A DNA stretch of 63,514 bases, filler included, from Octopus bimaculoides (taxonomy: Eukaryota), in NCBI RefSeq assembly GCF_001194135.2. It is 5 parts of 5 records of this genome, joined end to end, with 100 filler letters (N's around TTAATTAATTAA, not from the genome) between each part and the next. Parts side by side here need not be neighbours in the genome. Positions count along the whole stretch, not along the records: positions 17,309 to 28,355 come from NC_068982.1; 4 more parts are not named here. One strand, given 5' to 3'. Position 1 is the stretch's first letter. Each line of letters begins with the position of its first letter. This document shows positions 17,209-28,607 of the stretch, piece by piece. A model generated the notes under the pieces. The model worked only from the letters and a program-made list of their open reading frames with translations. It was not told where the DNA came from and ran no database searches. The position numbers and the translations under genes were made by a program.

Positions 17209-17308
17209 NNNNNNNNNNNNNNNNNNNNNNNNNNNNNNNNNNNNNNNNNNNNTTAATTAATTAANNNNNNNNNNNNNNNNNNNNNNNNNNNNNNNNNNNN
17301 NNNNNNNN

Positions 17309-17620
17309 CTAGGTTGACTCTAAGGCCCTTCAATTTTAGACCTTGCTTCCACACCTGAAACTTCTCCTCTAGTTCTGATAGTGACTCCGCAATTAGGGCA
17401 AGGTCATCAGCATAGAGGAGCTCCCAGGGGCAACCTGTCTTGAACTCCTCTGTGATTGCCTGGAGGACTATGATAAATAAGAGGGGGCTGAGGACGGAAC
17501 CTTGGTGGACCCCTACCTCTACCCGGAATTCATTGCTGTACTCATTTCCAACCTTCACCTTACTGGCAGCATCTCTGTACATGGCTCGCACAGCTCTTAC
17601 TAACCATTCTTCTATCCCAT
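17309..17620 (-). mobile_element. RTE-clade LINE reverse transcriptase fragment
   Basis: GIEEWLVRAVRAMY...VGVHQGSVLSPLLF...WELLYADDLALIAES contains the QG..LSP and YADD RT motifs, with no stop in the visible part. Confidence 0.93.
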
Positions 17621-18124
17621 GATTTCATTTATTAGTGATGTTTTAAGAAACATTATCTTCACTGAATAAGCAGGTTCTTTTAGGCATTATTTATGGTTTT
17701 TTCAGTACCTCTAACATTTTGGAGTTCCCACACCTCTTGGGAACTGGTAAGGGTAAGGGAGGAAGAAACTACATCTTATTTTGTCTTCACCTAGCTGAAT
17801 GCTTGCAATAGAGGGGCTCAGCAAAAGGCACCTAAGGACCAGTTGACAATGTTAAACTGAGCAAAAAATGGTCACAGTCCAGTCCATGGGCTTGGACAGC
17901 GGGACTAAACTGAGAAGAAATATGTCGAGAAACAAACTTCTCAAACACACAACCATACAAGGACCAATATTAGTGGGTGTATTATATTATATTAACATTA
18001 TAGTATATATATACATTAACATATTATAGTACAAACATTCAAAAGTTAAATATAAAGTTCATAACGTATTATTTAAGAACATGATGGCAATAAAAAGTTA
18101 ACAAGTTTAAATTAGTAAGCTTTT

Positions 18125-18310
18125 TTAACCGTTTCATGACTATATTCCTAATGAAATACACAATCTATGTATTTCAGTAAATTTTTAATATAATCAAGAA
18201 CTTGGAAGGATTTACTAAAATAACTTTTTCATTATTAAGCTAATATTGAGAACATATCTTAAAAGATTTTACATAAATTATGATTGAAATTTTAAGTTTA
18301 ATATAAATAC
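18125..18310 (+). repeat. Probable non-autonomous DNA transposon (piggyBac-like MITE) remnant
   Basis: Begins ttaaccgttt (resembles TTAA+CCCT) followed by an AT-rich body. Classification is from memory of similar elements only. Confidence 0.3.
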
Positions 18311-18689
18311 ATTGATTTGCCTTAAATGACTGCAGTTGATCATTTGCTAGAAATGTCCTTCATTTGTTTGTTTTAATTTCTTATTGCCATAACACTATTT
18401 TTATTGATATCATTCATTAATTCGATTATTTAAACAGCAATGAACTACAGAAACACTCGTAAACGATCTCATACAATCACTTTCTCAAACACGATATTTT
18501 TATGAATTACAACTCCAACTACTTTCTAACATAGATAAGTTGGTTGTAGGCACAACTCAATAAAAAAAAGTAATATTCAATATGATGTAGAGCTTATATT
18601 TATCAGTTGACGATTCATTTCTTTGCCACAATTTTGCTCTACTCTTTCTTTTTTTTTTTTTTCTAGTCAAAAATGAAAACAGAGGCTAT

Positions 18690-19135
18690 GATCCTTCACA
18701 GGGTGTCCGAGATTGGGGAATGGGAAGAACTTATTCCTCAAAACGGTAACCCGGCCCAAAAGCTTGCATCAATGGAATCCACTACAAGACTAATGGATTT
18801 AAACTGAAAGACGAATTCAGTTTACTACCCATGTAAGCCATTACAAGATATGACCACAAAATACAAAGAGTTGAAACAAATAACGCAAGGCATCTGGTCT
18901 GATGTTCTTTCAGTTCCGAAAGAACGAAAAACCAAGTTGACGTCGGTGGGATTTGATCTTAGCACACGGAGAGCGAGACCTGTCTACTCGGTGAAGACCA
19001 GCGTGAAGAAACCGAAGCTGGCTACATCTTTTGCAAGGGACAAAAGCCATGAAGATCAGCGTGACTACGGTGTTGGCTTTGCCATCAAGAGCCAACCGGT
19101 CAGAATGCACGGTGAGGTAAGCTATCGGATGCTCT
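18690..19135 (+). mobile_element. RTE-clade LINE 5' region and apurinic endonuclease start, decayed
   Basis: Frameshifted translation VPKERKT, ETCLLGEDQREETEAGYIFCKG and DYGVGFAIKSQ matches PERRTA...ETR..GEG...GYTFFW.G...GVGFAIK. Confidence 0.75.
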
Positions 19136-19954
19136 AATGATTCTGCCAATTCATCACTCAAGCAATCTGTTGGAAATAGCAGCTAAATCTTCCTTAAACC
19201 ACTTATTACAACTTTAAATAAAGAAAATTACACCAGACTGACGGGTACGTCAGATACTCCTTTCATCATGGGTTTGCTCTTTCATTGTCGATTTGAGCTA
19301 ATTGGCCATAACTGATTGTTACTACATAAGGTTACCAGTTCTAACACAGCGATTTTTGTGTGCGCGTATGAGCAGACAGACAGAGATAGCTAGCTAAATA
19401 GATAGATAGATAGATACGTCGGGTCTACGGGGTTACCTTGGGTTTCACGTTCATAAAGCGCTTAGCTTTAGTGTTTCTTCAGAACCTAGGCCTATAATCT
19501 CTCTCTCTCTCTCTCTCTCCACACACACATGCGTGCAAGTAATTTATTTTATCTTTTGTTCATCAAAATTCTTATTGTTTCACTTTTCTTTGTATAAGTT
19601 TAAATTTAAAACGTATACTTATTCCTATAAATTTCGCTTCCAAATACCAACAAGAAAATACAAATTCAGAGACATTTTGTTACAATACATCGGACATATA
19701 CCACAACATCAATATTGTTAACTAAACATATGGCGGCGTAAATTTCTCAATCAAGTACAGTTAACTTGCACAATTATTTTTGATGCACATGAAACAGAAG
19801 CGAAACTACGCAACAAAAGTATGCGCGAGCATGCGGGTATGTATATAAACAAGGGTATGTCAACTAATATATATATAATAGTACCCGATGGCGAAGTTTA
19901 ACATACACACCTGAAAAAAAAAGTTACGATACGAGAAAATCTCTATACAGCCGA

Positions 19955-20100
19955 CTGATGTGCTAGAGATAGCAACTAAATCTCCCTCAAAATCACTGCC
20001 TTAAATAAGAGTACATACGGTAGGCAGGATGGTCACGTTTGGAACGCTCATGGCTAATTTGGGTTAAACTGATTGTTACTATATAAGGTTTCCTATCTGA
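19955..20100 (+). repeat. Unclassified repeat family E; related pieces at about 19170, 37350-37560 and 40895-41225
   Basis: Recurrent motif gaaatagcagctaaatctccctcaaa and ggatggtca(t/c)g...ggaacg on both strands. Confidence 0.45.
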
Positions 20101-21479
20101 TCTCAGAGATTTGTAAGTATAATTTAGTAATTAAATGATCATACAACAGTCTACAATAGAATGAAATTAATTTGATAACCAGCTGGCTTATAATTATTTG
20201 TTAAATGAGAAATATCAAAGTATTAGAACAATATTAGGTATGTATCACAGTTACCCTGTATTCTCTTTCTTCAACGATCATAATTGTAAACCAATTCTAA
20301 TAACTGGATATATTCGAAATAACGATTTATTTATAATGTAGGTGCAAAGCCACGAATGTTATGGAAGTTCTATTACCGAGTATATCGACGGTAGCACATT
20401 CCCCAAATTTCTGCTGTTACTTTACTTGCTTTATCGATTTCCCGGAAGGATGAAAGGCGAAGTCGACTATGACCAAACTTGGAACATTTGAAATAGTAAA
20501 ACGAATGAAGAGGTGATTATAAAGCGAATACACGAGAGAAAGTTTCAGTACTTACATCTGACAGAATGAAAAGCAACTCTAGGATTCGGATCAAAGCTTG
20601 CTCCAAGTCTAAGTTCAACAACACTATTGTCTTCTGCCATGACGAGACAAGCTAGAGTTGAGAAGGACCACGCTAAAATAGAAAAGTTATTTACAACAAA
20701 AACAGGAACTAAGAGAACTGATGTTATCTATCGAAAGAGATAGATGTGAGTAAAGAAAAGCATTTGTATGCATGTGAACAGTAGAGATGTCGAAAAATAT
20801 CTCGAATGGGACAGGAACTGTGAGTAGAGAGAGAATGTCAACAGACTCTGGAATGGGACATGAAAATAATAGGCATTGAAGAGCTCGGTAATAAAGAGAA
20901 ATAACTCTTATGTATACGCATCGTCTTTAGGATATGAAGTCGAAACCTCCAGCTTTACGGGAGTGTTGCGTTCTGTAATTTTACCGTAATGTGGGATTCC
21001 GTAAAACGAAAATCAATTCCCCATTGATTTCGATGTTATAAAATTTTCCGATGAATTTCTTTTTTTTTTCGAAAACCATACCCCCAGAACAATAGAGCAA
21101 TCTTTATGCATTCAAATAAATCTTAAACAGAATACAATACAAAACATTTTAAGAAAAATATATTAGGGAATAAATAGAAATATTACATTAGGATACATAT
21201 CACAAAATATGTTAGTCGGTAGGGTGCGATGGGAATTACTTGGATTAAAAGGGACACTATTTTCTACTCTGCAGATCATGATCATGACTATTTCAAGGGT
21301 GACAAACATCTTCAAAGTTATTCAACATTTACAGTATTCCATTTCGTTGAACAGCTCCTGGGTAGGGACTGAACTCAGTATGCAGTCTTTTTGTAATTTT
21401 ACGTTCACATTTCACAATTATGATTGTTATCGGCAAAGATTTGCAAACCTTATTCGGCAAATTCCAACCCTTTAGCTAT

Positions 21480-22625
21480 ATTCTTGACAGTCAACTGAAA
21501 AGGACCCAGTGGAGCTTCTATATCCTCTAACTAAACATTCTGCTCCTCTAAGAAAACCAGCTTCTATGGGACTTGAGCAACTAATCAATCAATCTACAAT
21601 TTCTTCAAACCTTACATCAAGTGCCAAGTGAATCGTAGCATCTGATATAGTAATCTGACTGCTGAATATTCCCACCAAACCTTTCTATTTGTGGAAAATC
21701 TGTAAAGTCCCTGATATAAACCAGACATATATTTTCCAAATCAAACATTCATATCGCTGAAAGATTCACTTCATCTCGTGACTCGACTGCAATCCTCTCT
21801 TGAACTTTTCCCAGGAGTTCCCATCAATTGCTTTTTATGAATTGTTTCGAAATTCTGATATGATATATTGTGAAACTTGCTATCACACCATGGTTCATTG
21901 ATTGGAGCAAAGAAATTGTGTTCTTAGGAATATACTCCACTCTCATATTATTAGAAAGCACATTTACTTTCACTGGATGGCTAAGTGTATTGTCTGAAAT
22001 GAGAAAAACTTTCTGGGAAACATTACACGGGACACGCATCTTTCTACAGCAGGGTAGGAAAGTTTGTAAACCAGTATCGCAAAAGGCTCGTAGTTCTTCA
22101 AGACTTTCTATTTGAATGTCAGATCATAGATAGATTAAATTTTGCATAACCTACGAAAATCATTGTATTTTTGGAGTAAGGGTAGTAATTTCACATCAAC
22201 AGTAGCATTTCTTTCGACTAGATGCGCAAGACGATTTTTGAAAATTTAATAACCCAGTGCTAAGTTTTCTTCACTTGAAATAAAAGCTCTAACAGACATG
22301 TAGACTCATAAAATCCTATTTTTATCAGTAGTGTTTATTTGTTCTGGTATGTAGCCTACTTCAGCAATTATTTTCCCCAGCTCCGCAGGATCATAATTAC
22401 TACAGGTTCTGTATAGTATTGTCAGTTTCACAGGTCAGTTTATCGTTGTGCAAAATCAGGCGTTTCTTATACCTTTCAAACCAGATTTTACTGGCCAGAA
22501 AAGGTTTTGCATCAAAAGTTGCACCTTCCCCTTCTTGCAAACCATCGAACAAGCTTTCAGCGTTCGCTTAAAACAATCGTTATTTTTATCGTCATATTGT
22601 GTCCAGTCTGATTGTCAATCCACTC
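21480..22625 (-). pseudogene. Decayed Tigger/TIGD1-like DDE transposase
   Basis: WIDNQ, FLASKIWFERYKKRLILHNDKLTCE, IIAEVGYIPEQINTTD, NATVDVKLLPLL and VFLISDNTLSHP...EYIPKNTISLLQSMNHGVIASF, with multiple stops and frameshifts. Confidence 0.85.
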
Positions 22626-22874
22626 TCTCTGGAGGAGGAGGAGCTTTAGAAAAGGTGATCAATTATAATTATTGAATAATGTTCATTGTTATATATAGTG
22701 CTCCAGCTTCATCTAGATTAGTGTGATAGAGGGAGACAGGAATATCTTGTGGACAGGAATTTAGAAAGACAAATTTCAATTTCTTTTGCTCCAGATGGAC
22801 AAGGATTTTCCCCATTTCATTAGATGTAACACACTATGTAAAGTATAATTCTTGCATGTCTCAATTCCTTATAA

Positions 22875-24110
22875 TTATACATTTATTATTTTTTTTTTTT
22901 TCACTTTTGAAACTATGGACTTTTTATACTTACGTTTCTGTTTACTTTCTATTGTTTCAGAGATAGGTATTCTCATATTTTTATTTATGGGGAAAGAAGA
23001 CTGAATTTCAGAAATACTATGGTAATGCTTCTCGACATCCTCTAAAACATTTGGCTGACATCTTTCCTTGAATCTTCTTATATATTTAGTTTCGGGACAT
23101 AAAGCTGATTGTAGAAATTTCTGTTTATTGTTGAGATTAAGAGTATGTAAACCATTATTTGATATTGGTTTCTTTTCCAGAAATTCAAAATCTGTGGAAT
23201 GAAAATGCTCTTCTGGACGATCTGAAGTCCCACGATACATTGCATTTAGCCGTCTTCTCACAAGTTGTTGCTGCTCCACTCTATAATACGGCCACGCAGC
23301 ATCAACTTCCTTCCAAGCAGGAATAGTCAAAGTAAATCGCTGTCTTTTGTAACATGTAGATACTTCACTTAATTTAAATTCAAAGGATTTTTTGTCATTT
23401 TCGGAAATGCCATGTCTTTTCAATAATCGAAGTAGTTCACACTTGTTATATGGTCGAAGAGCTAACAAATGAATAATTCTCTTTCGTAATGATGATTTCC
23501 TAACGTATGAGGGAATATGTAAATCATTACTCAATGAAAATGAAGATTCCCCAGATAAATTGTCAGATATTAAGGCCTTATTATTCCAGCCATCACAAAG
23601 TGATGCATTAAAATTCGAAACCTCATTATCCGAATGCGAGAGAAATTTGTTGTATTTAAGATTCTTTGATAGACAAATCTCTTTCGCAGGTTTCTTTTTC
23701 GCTTCTTCCACGTGCATTCTTTTTCTGAATTCTTTAAACGAATCACGATTCCCCTGCATAACTAGTTTATGAGTGATACACCCTAAAGAACTGATACAGT
23801 TTTCATTTTTTGACAGCACTTGCTGGAGACAATAAAAAACGCCATTGACTTTACCTTGCACGCAATATAAGTTAAAATGAAATGTATATTGTTCGCTATC
23901 TGTCTCTAAAGGACATACAGGAATTTGAATAAAACCTGTACCATCGTTATATATTTTAATAGTGGGATGCAGACAACTCTCTGTTGCGTTTCTTAAAAAA
24001 TCTTGCAGTTTTCCTAAAATGGACTCTGTAAAAACTGCGTGTATGATTGTTTTGTCGTCTTCACAGGAAGTCGACATGGTATACAGAGGATGTTTTTCTA
24101 GTGTTGACAT
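22875..24110 (-). CDS. ELL: Intronless ELL-like RNA polymerase II elongation factor (411 aa), C-terminally truncated; probable retrogene
   Basis: Uninterrupted 411-codon ORF in AT-rich DNA. The N-terminal part (KTIIHAVFTES...HPTIKIYNDGTGFIQIP...FYCLQQ...LGCITHKLVMQGNRDSFKEFRKRM) follows the ELL N-domain pattern. SLRKRIIHLLALRPYNKCELLRLLKRHG...WKEVDAAWPYY...QLVRRRL matches the ELL winged-helix motif (R.R.IHLLAL.PY.K.EL...DWP.Y). It ends in a Lys-rich stretch with no occludin/ELL domain. Confidence 0.88.
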   Translation of the reverse strand: MSTLEKHPLYTMSTSCEDDKTIIHAVFTESILGKLQDFLRNATESCLHPTIKIYNDGTGFIQIPVCPLETDSEQYTFHFNLYCVQGKVNGVFYCLQQVLSKNENCISSLGCITHKLVMQGNRDSFKEFRKRMHVEEAKKKPAKEICLSKNLKYNKFLSHSDNEVSNFNASLCDGWNNKALISDNLSGESSFSLSNDLHIPSYVRKSSLRKRIIHLLALRPYNKCELLRLLKRHGISENDKKSFEFKLSEVSTCYKRQRFTLTIPAWKEVDAAWPYYRVEQQQLVRRRLNAMYRGTSDRPEEHFHSTDFEFLEKKPISNNGLHTLNLNNKQKFLQSALCPETKYIRRFKERCQPNVLEDVEKHYHSISEIQSSFPINKNMRIPISETIESKQKRKYKKSIVSKVKKKKIINV

Positions 24111-24220
24111 AGTGTAAACAAACGACCTTCTTGTTTGATTAATTCCGAAATGCTTATTTTTTTAATATTTTCAGAACTATATTAGTTCAAAGCTGTTTCT
24201 ATTGTATCTACCCCAGTTTG

Positions 24221-24230
24221 ATGACGTCAT
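24221..24230. promoter_or_regulatory. Perfect CRE/ATF palindrome ATGACGTCAT, about 110 bp upstream of the ELL-like ATG
   Basis: Sequence gtttg-ATGACGTCAT-aatt. A TGACG half-site follows at about 24239. Confidence 0.5.
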
Positions 24231-25146
24231 AATTAGTTTGACGTTTTATTTGTGGAATTTTTATTGCAAAATCACTGATACCAGTTTTATCTTCAATATC
24301 CATTCTTCAAAAGTCTGTAGTAACCTACATATTAACAAGCGGGTGTAATTATTAAAATTCATATCTAAATTAACTTACATCCTTTTTGTAACTATTCTAA
24401 AATAACTGTTTTATACAAGTTTCATTAAAGAAAAGCTGCTTGCCAGTTACAAATTGAAACCAGTCAAACCGGGAAATTTTAATAAATTACATTATTGAAT
24501 TTCTCAAAACTGTAGTCGTTTTAAAAATGCTTATTAGTCTGATCTGGAGAGAGCGGCTGTGCTCATGGCTTTGACAAGCCCTCCAAAACCAGTGAAATAG
24601 ACCCAGTTAATGTTCCGCTGGTATTGTCGTAAGGTGACGGTTGCAGTAAGAAAAATGCTTGAAGAGAATTCCTGGACGACCGACATTTCGGAAAGAAACA
24701 ATTAGAAGCTGATAGGGTAGAACCTGAACTCAATATTGGAAACAAGAAGACATAGATGTACGAGTTTCAATGGATGTAACACGAGCTCGGTCAACCAGCC
24801 AGCTCTCAGGACTTGATGATGTCACTGTAATGAGCGGTAGAAAAGGAGGAGATAGGAAACATATCTATGTGCCAGAGGCTATAGTGTGTTGCTGAACCAC
24901 TTCATTGTGGTACTCACATGAGCTTGGTAGAGAATCAGTTGTTCTTTAGTTGGTGTGTATGTATTCACAAAAACATACATACATGCATACACACATACAT
25001 ACACAACCAAGACACGCACGCACACGCACACACGTATCCCAAAAGATGTATTTAAAAAAGCCTCCCTTTTTTGTTTGTTTGCTTTCATTAAATTAAGACT
25101 ATTCAATTTTCACGGTTCCCTTTGCATTTTCAATGATAGTCTGTTT

Positions 25147-25160
25147 ATTGCCATGGCAAC
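25147..25160. promoter_or_regulatory. Near-perfect RFX X-box (ATTGCCATGGCAAC)
   Basis: One mismatch from the palindromic X-box GTTGCCATGGCAAC, about 1.04 kb upstream of the ELL-like ATG. Confidence 0.5.
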
Positions 25161-25342
25161 TATAGCAGCAAACAGTTTCGACTTCCGCTTGTGAGGACAT
25201 GGACTCATTTCATTGGCTAAAACTATATAACTTTAAATGCTTCTATCCTGTTAATTATTAACCCCCCGCCCCAAAATGGATGCAATATTGTCATTGTAAA
25301 TTATGACATGATACAGGGCGCAGCCATTACTCTGCGTATTTG

Positions 25343-25374
25343 TTACGTCATACATCACAAACTCATGACGTCAT
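25343..25374. promoter_or_regulatory. CRE cluster: TTACGTCA plus a second perfect ATGACGTCAT
   Basis: ttacgtca at 25343-25350 and atgacgtcat at 25365-25374. Confidence 0.5.
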
Positions 25375-25550
25375 ACTACTTTGTGTGCACATCTTAACGT
25401 AAAGTCGCTTTCATTGCATCTCTCTTCTTTGTAAACATTCACATTCACATACCACCTTTTACATACACACACATATATTCACACAGAGTTGAAACACTGT
25501 TTGATTTATTTTATTAGCGTACAATTTTCATCATCCCACTACCAAGTATA

Positions 25551-25792
25551 ACATCACCCCTTCTTTCCTTATTCATCTATCACCCCTTCCTTTCTTATTC
25601 ATAAACACAATCATATTATCATAGTACATTATCTTGGTAACCATGGGAGTAATGAAAAAAATATGACATCACCCCTTCCTTCCTTATTCAGTTATCAACC
25701 CTTCCTTTCTCATTCGTAAACACAAGAGTATTATTATAGTAGATTATCTCGGTAACCATGGGAGCTATGAAAAAATACAAAGCCCAACATCA
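25551..25792. repeat. Tandem duplication, about 115-bp unit x2 plus the start of a third
   Basis: Units start acatcacccc at 25551 and 25666 and acatcacc at 25787. Both complete units contain ggtaaccatgggag. Confidence 0.85.
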
Positions 25793-27255
25793 CCACCGGA
25801 TCATTCTACATATCAGTGTAATTTTTCGCGCAATTCCACCCAGCCGTTTGACCGTGACTCCCAAGACAAGAAAGAATCGCACATGTTAAATTTATATGTA
25901 TAGATCCATCGATCTGTCTGTTTCAGATACTGATTTTTAAATTTGTAATATGAAACAACTAGTCGTCACAAAAGTTGAGTAACGTCCCTTGTGCTTTAAA
26001 TATTGAGTTACTTCCCTCAACAAAATATTAGGTTTGTATTTGTACACTTCACTGTTTAGCATTGCCACCTCGTAAGAGAAGAATAGATGAAACGATTTAA
26101 GCCCTAAAAAATGGGGTACTTTTATATAAAATAGAAACCTCATAATGTTTCATCCTAGCTTACTGTTAAGGTAGTCATGATAAAACTATTCAACAATGAA
26201 CTCATAATTAAATCCAGATTTCATCCGAGAAGGGGTATACATTTTCTATCGACTTAAAACCAAAGATTAAGTGCTAAAAAAAAAAAAGCAATTCTATAAC
26301 AGGTAAACTTATTTAAAGAAGCCTTGGAAAAAAAATTATTATATAAAAATTTCCCACATTATGAAAAAATCTTAAAGGATATAAGAAGGTATAAAAATAC
26401 CACATATATACATAAAAAATATCACACACACATAATACATTTTGGATATAAAAAGAGCAAAAGAATAAAAAAAAAGTAAGGATAGATCGAGCTATTCTTA
26501 ACAAAAGCAAATTAAAAAATAAAGTAAGACAAGGTTATTTAAATTTTTGTAAGATGTAATATTACAGGCACTGGTGTATGTAGAGTCATATAGTTCCTGG
26601 GGGCTATCGAACATACTTAGGGGAGGCATAAGATCTGGTAATTCATTGTAAATATACTTATTATGACTGATAGGGAAGAACGTCTTAGAACAGAAGGAAA
26701 AACACTGCAATCTACGTAGAGGATGAATGCATAATAAACTGATAGGGGTTGTAATAGGGCAATATTATATATAATTCCATACATTAGAGGGTATGTTATG
26801 AAAGATGACACCCCAGATAATTTCTATCAAGAAATCATTGTATAAGTATAATATTATTTGTATAATATTAAATCTACCGGTACTGCTATGCACACATTCA
26901 TATCAAACCAGCTGCTGCTAACTACCTAGAACCCACAAGAGTTAAAAAGAGTGACAGAGACAGACAGAAAAAAGGAAAATGTCCCTTACATTTGAAAACT
27001 ATGGAAATATATTTAAAAAAACATTTCATTTAATTTGTCCACAATTTAATTGTTTTTCATGGTTTACTCTACGTTGAAAAAGTTGCAAAGACTGAAACCG
27101 GTACTAAAATGTTCTTCATGATAAAATTATTTTAGCATTTTCTTCCTTTGTCTTATTTTCTTTATGTATATATNNNNNNNNNNNNNNNNNNNNNNNNNNN
27201 NNNNNNNNNNNNNNNNNNNNNNNNNNNNNNNNNNNNNNNNNNNNNNNNNNNNNNN

Positions 27256-27300
<45 letters not shown>

Positions 27301-28607
27301 GTATGTATGCATGTATGTATGTATGTATGCAATGCATGCATGTATGTATGTATGTATGTATGTGTGTGTGTATGTATGCATGCATTAATCGAATTGTACA
27401 ATATTATATATCCAGTTCGGCTTACCTTATCGTTGGGTTTCGCATTAGAGGTTCAACAGAGTGTTAGGTAACAATCCGATTATGTAACCTTGTGCTCTTC
27501 AGAGGTAGCTGGGACTCTTACTTACACGGCTTACACACACGCCCGCGCGCGCAAGCGCACACACATATCTTTTTTTCTTTTCGTCTTTTACTTGTTTCAT
27601 TCTGTAGACTGCGTCAGACTGCAGCCATGTTGGGGCAATATTATCTTTTATCTTTTGTTTCGGTCATTAGGTTGTAGCCATGTAATATAGGGGTTTTAGT
27701 TCTTCTGAACGGCTTTGTTATGCGGATATAAAAAAAAAAAACACAAGCGGTGGGTCAGAAGACACAGTGGCCCAAAGACACACATACATACACACGCGCA
27801 CACCAACCACCAACCTCACTCTATTCCACACTTCCTTTTTCTTCCTTCTCATCCTTCTCACTTCCTCGTTTCCTCCTTCCCTCCCTCTTAACCTCCCATT
27901 TTCTCCTTCTTTCTCTTTCTTTCTTTCTCTCCTTTTCTCTTCTCTTTTTCATTGACTTTCTTTTTCCTCCTCCTCTCTTTCTCTTTGTTCCACTCTTCAT
28001 TCACATTTAGATTGCGCATATATGCGTATTATACGCACGTTCACTATATGTTCTTGCTTATTTTCTCTCTCTACTTCTTCCTTCCTATCCCAGCCTTTCT
28101 CTCCTCTCTTTTCTTCCTTTGCTATCTTTCTTTTTTTCCATTTCTTTCTTTCTTTTTTCTCTTTCTTTCTTTATTCTCTTTCTTTCTCCCTTTCCTTTTT
28201 TATGACAACTACATTCCCCCCGCCACCCCCTTTCCCATATTTAACGTTATTATAGAGACGTTACTCTTTACCCCTCCACTCCATAGATTAAGATACAATT
28301 CTCGTTACCAGTGCATAGGTTTTCCATGCGCAAACTTATATGCGTGTGTGCGTATNNNNNNNNNNNNNNNNNNNNNNNNNNNNNNNNNNNNNNNNNNNNT
28401 TAATTAATTAANNNNNNNNNNNNNNNNNNNNNNNNNNNNNNNNNNNNNNNNNNNNAGGTCACAGAAGTGTGACGAAAGAACTCTGGCCGAAATAAGATTA
28501 AGATTAAGATTAATGTAATATAAAGCTGAAAAAAAAAAAAAATTAACACCAAATATACAGTGCGTGTGTTTTTATTGGCTAAACTGGCAATATGACCATC
28601 CCCAAGT

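Follow-up and report, generated by a model that had tools for sequence, protein, structure and literature searches.

The window analysed here is a stretch of 63,514 nucleotides of Octopus bimaculoides DNA, filler included. Its segment from position 17309 to 28355, called the piece below, carries on the minus strand a 411-codon open reading frame (ORF) related to the RNA polymerase II (Pol II) elongation factor ELL and referred to as ELL-like. We favour, with some reserve, the interpretation that this ORF opens an octopod-specific chimeric retrogene, the product of which would be a single-chain ELL-EAF module devoid of the occludin/ELL domain (OCEL). The ELL-like sequence appears to be joined to the EAF gene by an in-frame splice, and it is rather likely that this splice gives a real product kept by selection. 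The elements concerned are located as follows:

24111–24306, minus strand: conserved block, promoter-like or 5' untranslated region (5'UTR), directly upstream of the ELL-like ATG, which aligns with Argonauta
22875–24110, minus strand: ELL-like ORF, ATG to TAA, 411 amino acids
22934–24110, minus strand: coding part of exon 1, ELL-like residues 1–392 and the first base of the junction codon, phase 1
23691–24083, minus strand: N-terminal dimerisation domain, residues 10–140, the beta-rich half of a TFIIF-like triple barrel (phmmer match to residues 23–144 of 7okx_M)
23232–23513, minus strand: winged-helix domain (ELL_N2), residues 200–293 (phmmer, AlphaFold2 (AF2) and Foldseek)
22935–23231, minus strand: predicted disordered tail, residues 294–392 (AF2 predicted local distance difference test score (pLDDT) below 40 over residues 298–385)
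22928–22933, minus strand: 5' splice site GTAAGT after ...CAGAAAC, phase 1, identical in five species
22875–22927, minus strand: read-through tail, 19 codons RKYKKSIVSKVKKKKIINV and the stop, including a run of 13 A (A13); intronic if the donor is used
20673–22933, minus strand: intron 1, 2261 nucleotides (donor and acceptor sequences; comparison of O. vulgaris, O. sinensis and Argonauta)
20673–20916, minus strand: conserved non-coding block of 244 bp, 68% identical to Argonauta and 95.8% to O. vulgaris
20673–20674, minus strand: acceptor AG, 3' splice site ttttctattttAG, with a polypyrimidine tract upstream
20556–20672, minus strand: exon 2, composed of a 32-nucleotide leader, the EAF start, EAF residues 1–28 (MAEDNSVVELRLGASFDPNPRVAFHSVR) and one nucleotide (tblastn and sequence)

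A consensus 5' splice site, C/GTAAGT (the slash marks the exon boundary), was present inside the ORF at positions 22928–22934, 19 codons ahead of the stop. The acceptor was found 32 nucleotides upstream of the EAF start codon, ELL-like and EAF being 2.3 kb apart. When ...AAA CAG AAA C/GTAAGT is spliced to AG/CG TGG TCC, the C and the CG make a proline codon, followed by ten codons of former 5'UTR and by the EAF methionine. In the fusion frame the leader (20641–20672) would be translated as PWSFSTLACLV, the EAF start codon occupies positions 20638–20640, and the exon ends with ...AGA T/GTAAGT (20556/20555), its donor GT being at 20554–20555. One continuous ORF across a GT-AG junction, with phase 1 on both sides, was observed in O. 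bimaculoides, O. vulgaris, O. sinensis and Argonauta.

The junction is also present in existing gene models. Residues 1–392 of the ORF were 100% identical to XP_014781336.1 ("RNA polymerase II elongation factor ELL-like", 431 residues). The last 39 residues of this model, PWSFSTLACLV followed by MAEDNSVVELRLGASFDPNPRVAFHSVR, are unlike the last 19 of the ORF, and were placed by tblastn at 20557–20727 on the same strand. The O. sinensis protein XP_029655880.2, of 644 residues with Pfam ELL and EAF matches, consists of ELL-like 1–392, the 11-residue leader and the whole EAF of 240 residues, and its junction was confirmed base by base. The O. vulgaris model CAI9717901.1 (513 residues, Pfam ELL and EAF) starts at Met132 of the ELL-like exon, an internal start such as a 5'-truncated transcript assembly would give, and the original O. 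bimaculoides model, UniProt A0A0L8GG99, has the same junction. The sequence ...ESKQK/PWSF..LACLV-MAEDNS was in this way shared by four models, from at least three annotation efforts and in three Octopus species. A first-pass annotation of this DNA had described a self-contained single-exon gene for a free 411-residue protein, a claim that the four models do not support, as they splice the internal donor in frame to an EAF exon. It had named splicing to a downstream occludin exon as the alternative; splicing was indeed found in the gene models, and the exon reached is one of EAF, not an occludin exon. No transcript contigs on record matched the 411-residue product exactly. The locus goes under discordant names: "ELL-like", "EAF1-like isoform X2", "uncharacterized protein" or "reverse transcriptase domain-containing protein".

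The whole unit covers about 26 kb, the window containing exons 1 and 2, and the remaining exons are normal EAF exons. EAF residues 1–28, encoded in the window, are identical to the N-terminus of the Argonauta EAF (P0009), and in O. vulgaris and O. sinensis this exon leads into models with the EAF family PF09816. The octopod EAF looks single-copy, with 90% identity to the Argonauta EAF and about 75% to those of cuttlefish and squid. A word-indexed protein search with the EAF half omitted the fused cluster P0002, the query's own source, which makes its negatives unreliable; since P0002 itself was unlisted, the lack of an "EAF-only" Octopus protein among the results is not evidence.

Orthologous loci were compared in O. 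vulgaris (L001), O. sinensis (L014), Argonauta hians (L002) and a fourth octopod (L003–L006), the latter represented by Logan contigs from runs SRR11869384, SRR11869385, SRR11869390 and SRR11869391 with 86% DNA identity to the window. In these four samples the contigs were near-identical, 2.7–3.1 kb long and colinear with positions 24715–21609, and carried an intact orthologue of 427 residues. Only two islands of the piece aligned with Argonauta, where EAF follows the ELL-like ORF after about 6.9 kb, in the same order and again on one strand. The first island (24306–22924) corresponded to some 195 bp of promoter-like sequence and to the exon, and ended about 10 nucleotides past the donor. The second (20916–20539) corresponded to the 244 bp upstream of the acceptor and to exon 2, which was 90.6% identical. 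All five species (O. bimaculoides, O. vulgaris, O. sinensis, the fourth octopod and Argonauta) have the same donor GTAAGT in phase 1, and the acceptor TTTTAG/CG was conserved in Argonauta. The Argonauta leader, S-WHLSTQAHLV-M, has kept its length of 32 nucleotides and shows no stop when read in the fusion frame, with 8 of the 32 bases changed. Intron 1 measured 2069 and 2070 nucleotides in O. vulgaris and O. sinensis, respectively, and 6863 nucleotides in Argonauta, with no alignment to the latter outside the 244 nucleotides at the acceptor. The stop of the read-through frame was reached at very different distances past the donor (2 codons in Argonauta, 6 in O. vulgaris, 6 in O. sinensis, 19 in O. 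bimaculoides and 35 in the fourth octopod), and the tail sequences differed, with no conservation after the donor. By rough estimates, matching phase would occur by chance in about 1/3 of cases, ten stop-free codons with a probability of about 0.6, and the conservation of seven bases where identity is about 65% with a probability of about 0.05. Each of these facts of conservation is modest when taken singly, and together they favour a splice site in use.

The two conserved non-coding blocks may have distinct roles. The block upstream of the ELL-like ATG was 98.0% identical to O. vulgaris, compared with 90.9% further upstream. It contains at 24222–24229 a perfect palindrome of the cAMP response element (CRE) type, TGACGTCA, which is TGACGCCA in Argonauta, and an ACGTCA half-site upstream. 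The palindrome is a candidate core promoter element, and the block as a whole would act as a promoter. The block preceding the acceptor may hold the promoter or 5'UTR proper to EAF, or else splicing signals or enhancers. When the 5'UTRs of cuttlefish and squid EAF were compared with this second block, the scores were within the range of shuffled controls. The cuttlefish-type (cluster with the Sepia pharaonis EAF) and squid-type EAF transcripts have 5'UTRs of 115–230 nucleotides, with stops and no ELL part, and from these sequences the ELL-like/EAF arrangement looks octopod-specific.

The main rival explanation, possible although we find it doubtful, is that of the first-pass annotation, in which the retrogene stands alone. 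An unspliced mRNA would then give a free protein of about 400 residues, able to bind EAF in trans and to act with Pol II but not AFF, as a variant not dependent on the super elongation complex (SEC) or as a dominant-negative, and the fused models would be read-through or prediction artefacts caused by the tandem EAF gene. Such a gene would have its own ATG, its own stop and the conserved promoter-like block; with a stop 2–35 codons past the donor in every species, the unspliced message gives a complete protein. An AATAAA is present at the stop of the O. bimaculoides and O. vulgaris ORFs, the Argonauta annotation separates ELL-like from EAF, and the contigs of the fourth octopod, which are possibly genomic, hold the unspliced ORF. 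However, these contigs are colinear with the genome and have the same ends in several samples, as genomic assemblies would. Conservation as far as Argonauta is seen for the GTAAGT, its phase, the acceptor and the open leader, but for neither the C-terminal tail nor the AATAAA, and the donor is common to all four gene models. The two explanations are not exclusive, as both products could be made.

Several points weigh against the chimeric retrogene. The case for splicing is made wholly of gene models and conservation, and the models are in part interdependent: for O. vulgaris the pipeline, which used Iso-Seq and RNA-seq, also aligned O. bimaculoides UniProt proteins, including the fused model. 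In the Argonauta annotation, ELL-like and EAF are two genes. The 244-nucleotide block may be the EAF promoter, in which case EAF alone would be the main downstream product and the fusion a minor read-through isoform. The leader is without amino-acid constraint, 5–6 of its 11 residues being different in Argonauta, and its ten stop-free codons are not improbable by chance. Finally, the linker and tail of the ELL-like part are weakly constrained, the ratio of non-synonymous to synonymous substitution rates (dN/dS) being 0.4–0.8.

The nature of the protein encoded by exon 1 was clear from several searches. The Pfam family ELL (PF10390) matched residues 10–288 (E = 7.4e-42, 144.2 bits for a cut-off of 22.9), over profile positions 5–278 of 282. 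The Pfam search gave no match to Occludin_ELL (PF07303, the OCEL domain) in the 411-residue ORF, and all the top canonical ELL hits carry this domain. A hidden Markov model built from 85 canonical OCEL domains, applied to the three forward frames of the gene strand, found no OCEL remnant in the exon end and intron 1 of the five species (all hits with E > 0.4 and about 0 bits). ELL joins the SEC by the binding of OCEL to the AFF scaffold (AFF1/AFF4). Since OCEL was absent where the ELL-domain tests were positive, the ELL-like protein is, judged by its sequence, an ELL paralogue and not a SEC-type ELL.

In the Protein Data Bank (PDB), phmmer matched ELL2 of entry 7OKX in two stretches (residues 16–138 and 197–292), as well as the nuclear magnetic resonance structures of the winged helices of ELL and ELL2, 2doa_A (E = 4e-12) and 2e5n_A (E = 4e-9). 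The AF2 model, made for the 411-residue ORF only with an alignment of 48 ELL sequences, showed a beta-rich region at residues 10–140 (pLDDT 75–95) and a winged helix at residues 200–293 (pLDDT 92–98), residues 147–195 and 298–385 being disordered. The best Foldseek match of this model in the PDB was 7okx_M, ELL2 in the Pol II-DSIF-ELL2-EAF1 complex, with a template modelling (TM) score of 0.75 normalised to the target. Entry 2doa (TM 0.78, root-mean-square deviation 1.4 Å) and 2e5n were also returned, and TFIIF and other triple-barrel dimerisation subunits came after the ELL and ELL2 structures. According to the model, the N-terminal domain is half of a two-chain barrel, the other half of which is EAF in the known complex. 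In that complex the ELL2-EAF1 dimerisation domains sit on the Pol II lobe (PMC10716050). The first-pass annotation had described an ELL paralogue with an N-terminal EAF- and Pol II-binding domain and a winged helix but no OCEL, in agreement with Pfam, the PDB matches, AF2 and Foldseek. Its further proposal, that the protein engages EAF and Pol II without the SEC, stands in a modified form: according to the gene models EAF would be covalently attached rather than recruited. The conserved dimerisation domain, with its dN/dS of 0.08–0.29, suggests that the ELL-like protein would bind EAF and stimulate Pol II.

The ELL-like ORF was intact in all five octopod genomes, the only indel in its 392 codons being one of 3 codons in Argonauta. 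Its length was 411 residues in O. bimaculoides, 398 in O. vulgaris and O. sinensis, 427 in the fourth octopod and 391 in Argonauta. By the method of Nei and Gojobori (NG86), dN/dS was 0.20–0.39 for the whole exon, these ratios being approximate for Octopus-Argonauta pairs where dS is about 0.8. The winged helix (residues 201–290) was under the strongest constraint in the exon (0.03–0.09), ahead of the dimerisation domain (residues 1–140, with the values given above). The internal linker (residues 141–200) and the tail (residues 291–392) showed values of about 0.2–0.95, and 0.36–0.73 against Argonauta. For the tail taken from residue 294 to 392, dN/dS was 0.36–0.95 over the pairs and 0.36–0.57 where substitutions suffice, and the frame was open in five species out of five. 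Compared with O. vulgaris, the exon was 97.6% identical without a gap, and introns 1 and 2 were 86–87.5% identical with 15–19 gaps. The earlier claim that the ORF is kept by selection is consistent with all these values, which indicate purifying selection, and the exon is almost certainly a functional coding sequence derived from ELL.

The 411-residue ORF was by far the longest of the piece, all others being shorter than 152 residues. The runner-up, of 151 residues, is a CT-rich low-complexity sequence reaching the artificial edge of the piece, and the longest other ORFs corresponded to microsatellite or CT-rich low-complexity sequence. At a guanine-cytosine content of about 33%, some 7–8% of random codons would be stops (a rough estimate from base composition), so that an ORF of 411 codons is not due to chance. 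It could still be imagined that the ORF is a decaying pseudogene or a chance frame with no function, as it lies amid transposon debris and, compared with canonical ELL, its protein evolves about 3.6 times faster. We consider this extremely improbable: no disruption of the ORF was seen in any of the five species, Argonauta included, the dN/dS values are clearly below 1 with their minimum in the winged helix, the exon has no indel relative to O. vulgaris where the introns have many, and AF2 predicts confident domains. On dN/dS, intactness in five species and the gap-free exon this possibility was rejected.

The parent of the copy could be identified. Canonical ELL was found in O. sinensis (P0153, "ELL2", 578 residues with ELL and OCEL) and in Argonauta (P0154), so that the ELL-like gene is not the only ELL of these genomes, a point on which the first-pass annotation had made its proposal depend. 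The P0153 gene extends over 65 kb with 11 or more coding exons, and the part homologous to ELL-like residues 1–330, which in ELL-like is one uninterrupted exon, is split by at least 6 introns. The two proteins are about 30% identical and share the lineage-specific motifs RPYNKxELL and QLVRRR. In a neighbour-joining tree of 31 sequences and 256 columns, the ELL-like clade was sister to the octopod canonical ELL (bootstrap 0.99), with a very long stem and, within octopods, the faster evolution mentioned above. Past the winged helix, ELL-like still resembled the middle region of the canonical octopus ELL, weakly and in colinear order, and from this sequence trace the original copy was probably longer than the ELL domain. 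Because all introns are absent together and the sequence is nested in the ELL lineage of its own host, the comparison supports the view that the ELL-like exon is a processed retrocopy of a cephalopod ELL, as had been supposed, with an intron-containing parent now at hand.

The traces usually left by retroposition are faint. No convincing pair of target-site duplications was found flanking the copy, a test made weak by its great age, and a clear poly(A) tail was not recognisable. As the copy is old (dS about 0.8 within octopods), neither is expected to survive. The A13 run (about 22889–22901), situated 27–39 nucleotides past the donor, is degenerate in the other species. A 13-nucleotide direct repeat (22946–22958 and 24196–24208) was considered as a target-site duplication and rejected, one copy being inside the coding exon.

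The lack of a recognisable target-site duplication or clear poly(A) tail would also be expected of a DNA-level duplicate, that is, a segmental copy of ELL which later lost all its introns and its 3' half. Parent and copy are moreover on the same O. sinensis chromosome, CM016860.1, in the same orientation (canonical ELL, L015, at 51.7 Mb; ELL-like/EAF, L014, at 112.9 Mb; about 61 Mb apart). This origin seems improbable to us, since the loss of at least 6 introns at once along an unbroken coding stretch is what reverse transcription of a spliced mRNA classically produces. Two resemblances to the parent locus were noticed as weak leads to the origin of the donor, neither of them backed by statistics. 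The exon end and what follows, ...ESKQK/RKYK ("SKQKRKYK", 22935–22960), resembles the OCEL start ...DSQRQEYK (L015, 66749–66790), with no statistical support. The parent also has a phase-1 intron after ...SSKNE (G/GTATGT; L015, about 65700–65720), in the same phase as the ELL-like donor, the similarity there being too weak to be used.

We propose the following scenario for the chimeric retrogene. A processed ELL copy would have landed just upstream of the EAF gene, on the same strand, and would have kept the dimerisation half, which binds EAF and the Pol II lobe, together with the winged helix. The donor at the end of exon 1 would then have been spliced to the acceptor 32 nucleotides upstream of the EAF start codon, this spliced mRNA being presumably the main product. 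Translation from the ELL-like ATG would pass a disordered linker of some 100 residues, then the 11-residue leader derived from the 5'UTR, and reach the full-length EAF (644 residues in O. sinensis). In this model both halves of the dimerisation barrel are carried by one polypeptide, and the roughly 110 disordered residues between the winged helix and EAF are, in our judgement of the predicted structure, long enough for the halves to pair within the chain. The fusion would bind Pol II as ELL2-EAF1 does and could stimulate elongation. Without OCEL it would not dock to the AFF-scaffolded SEC, and probably not to other OCEL-dependent partners, and the C-terminal region of EAF would keep the other contacts of EAF. 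The fusion would add to the canonical ELL/EAF pool, or compete with it. In human cells, ELL-EAF1 has been reported as a complex separate from the SEC and from the little elongation complex (LEC) (PMC13324577), which makes a SEC-independent role plausible. Whether octopods have in fact hard-wired the ELL-EAF heterodimer as one chain, kept since before the Octopus-Argonauta split as a constitutively assembled Pol II module independent of SEC and LEC, is to our mind an evenly balanced question.

The surroundings of the exon are made of decayed repeats, two of which were recognised:

21827–22567, minus strand: decayed pogo/Tigger-type DNA transposon, with DDE_1 at 21827–22123 (E = 2e-7) and a weak Tc5 helix-turn-helix at 22403–22567
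about 17253–17627, minus strand: reverse-transcriptase (RVT_1) repeat fragment, with the domain match at 17253–17591 (E = 7e-12), at the edge of the piece (start 17309)

The pogo/Tigger-type remnant occupies part of intron 1 in the orientation of the gene, is interrupted by stops and frameshifts, and is common to O. vulgaris and the fourth octopod, the alignments of which run through it. The first description of an intact 411-codon ORF among broken neighbours was accurate, its coordinates being exact and the flanks decayed transposon remains. In O. vulgaris the RVT_1 repeat was found at two places of the locus (L001, about 30918 and 40698). In the window, the fragment lies where O. vulgaris synteny predicts EAF exon 3. 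The UniProt model A0A0L8GG99 (743 residues) threads it in as exons and misses the exon-3 residues; these exons look like an annotation artefact of a long interspersed nuclear element (LINE) inserted in intron 2. Elsewhere in the piece, a 115-bp unit was present in two tandem copies with 86% matches (25547–25775), a (TATG)n microsatellite of 31 copies adjoined a run of N (27258–27382), and a long CT-rich low-complexity tract (27750–28355) gave rise to spurious ORFs on the plus strand.

The 644-residue fusion was used as a phmmer query against 1.84 billion representative sequences, and among the best 150 of 792 matches no protein with ELL and EAF was found outside the octopod cluster. In the same 150, the long EAF matches were Drosophila-type EAF proteins with long tails, and a 300-residue ELL-only match was a tick fragment. 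A two-domain fusion is expected to outrank single-domain matches, which makes this absence strong rather than exhaustive. A full-text search of the literature found no paper on the identifiers of the locus or on a cephalopod ELL-EAF fusion. The sequence and the gene models were already public under their four names, and it is the interpretation that is new. If true, this would be the first natural "Rosetta stone" fusion of ELL and EAF and a natural single-chain TFIIF-like triple barrel. ELL and EAF have been studied as separate subunits, and both their assembly and their split among SEC, LEC and a free ELL-EAF pool are thought to be regulated (PMC13324577). A single-chain ELL-EAF free of AFF docking would be a natural experiment on the action of the bare module on Pol II, and a ready-made construct for biochemistry and structural work. 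It would also be an unusually clean chimeric retrogene, conserved across octopods, in which the host gene is the physical partner of the parent of the retrocopy, and would add to the cephalopod-specific changes in gene-regulatory machinery. More generally, the locus illustrates that a larger unit may begin with an exon that looks like an "intact intronless ORF".

The dimerisation domain and winged helix are common to ELL-like and to the canonical metazoan ELL and ELL2 (PF10390 and PF07303), with the fold seen in 7OKX and 2DOA. ELL-like differs from them by the absence of OCEL, by its single exon as opposed to at least 11, and by a predicted product that continues into EAF. Exon 2 and the downstream exons are those of an ordinary octopod EAF of the EAF1/EAF2 family (PF09816), but unlike in cuttlefish and squid the Octopus models place the EAF start codon inside a longer ORF begun in the ELL-like exon. 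Truncated mammalian ELL proteins, predicted in rat (P0213) and guinea pig (P0211) with PF10390 only, are also without OCEL; they derive from the canonical gene by alternative splicing instead of from a locus of their own under selection, and no EAF part is attached to them. The MLL-ELL leukaemia fusions are ELL-derived proteins with an altered domain complement as well, but they depend on the C-terminal part of ELL, the opposite half to the one present in ELL-like. By its dimerisation domain, ELL-like belongs to the fold class of TFIIF, one of the triple-barrel heterodimers with A49/A34.5 of Pol I and C37/C53 of Pol III. Interacting proteins encoded as one chain in some lineage are the "Rosetta stone" proteins of the concept of Marcotte and Enright, and ELL with EAF, an obligate heterodimer elsewhere, would be such a case. 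The closest precedents in gene structure are jingwei in Drosophila and TRIM5-CypA in owl monkey and macaques, in which a retrocopy was spliced to exons of a resident gene and the fusion was kept by selection. In both of these the retrocopy forms the 3' part and the partner is functionally unrelated, whereas the ELL-like retrocopy forms the 5' part, has its own promoter-like region, and is followed by a resident gene that encodes the binding partner of its parent.

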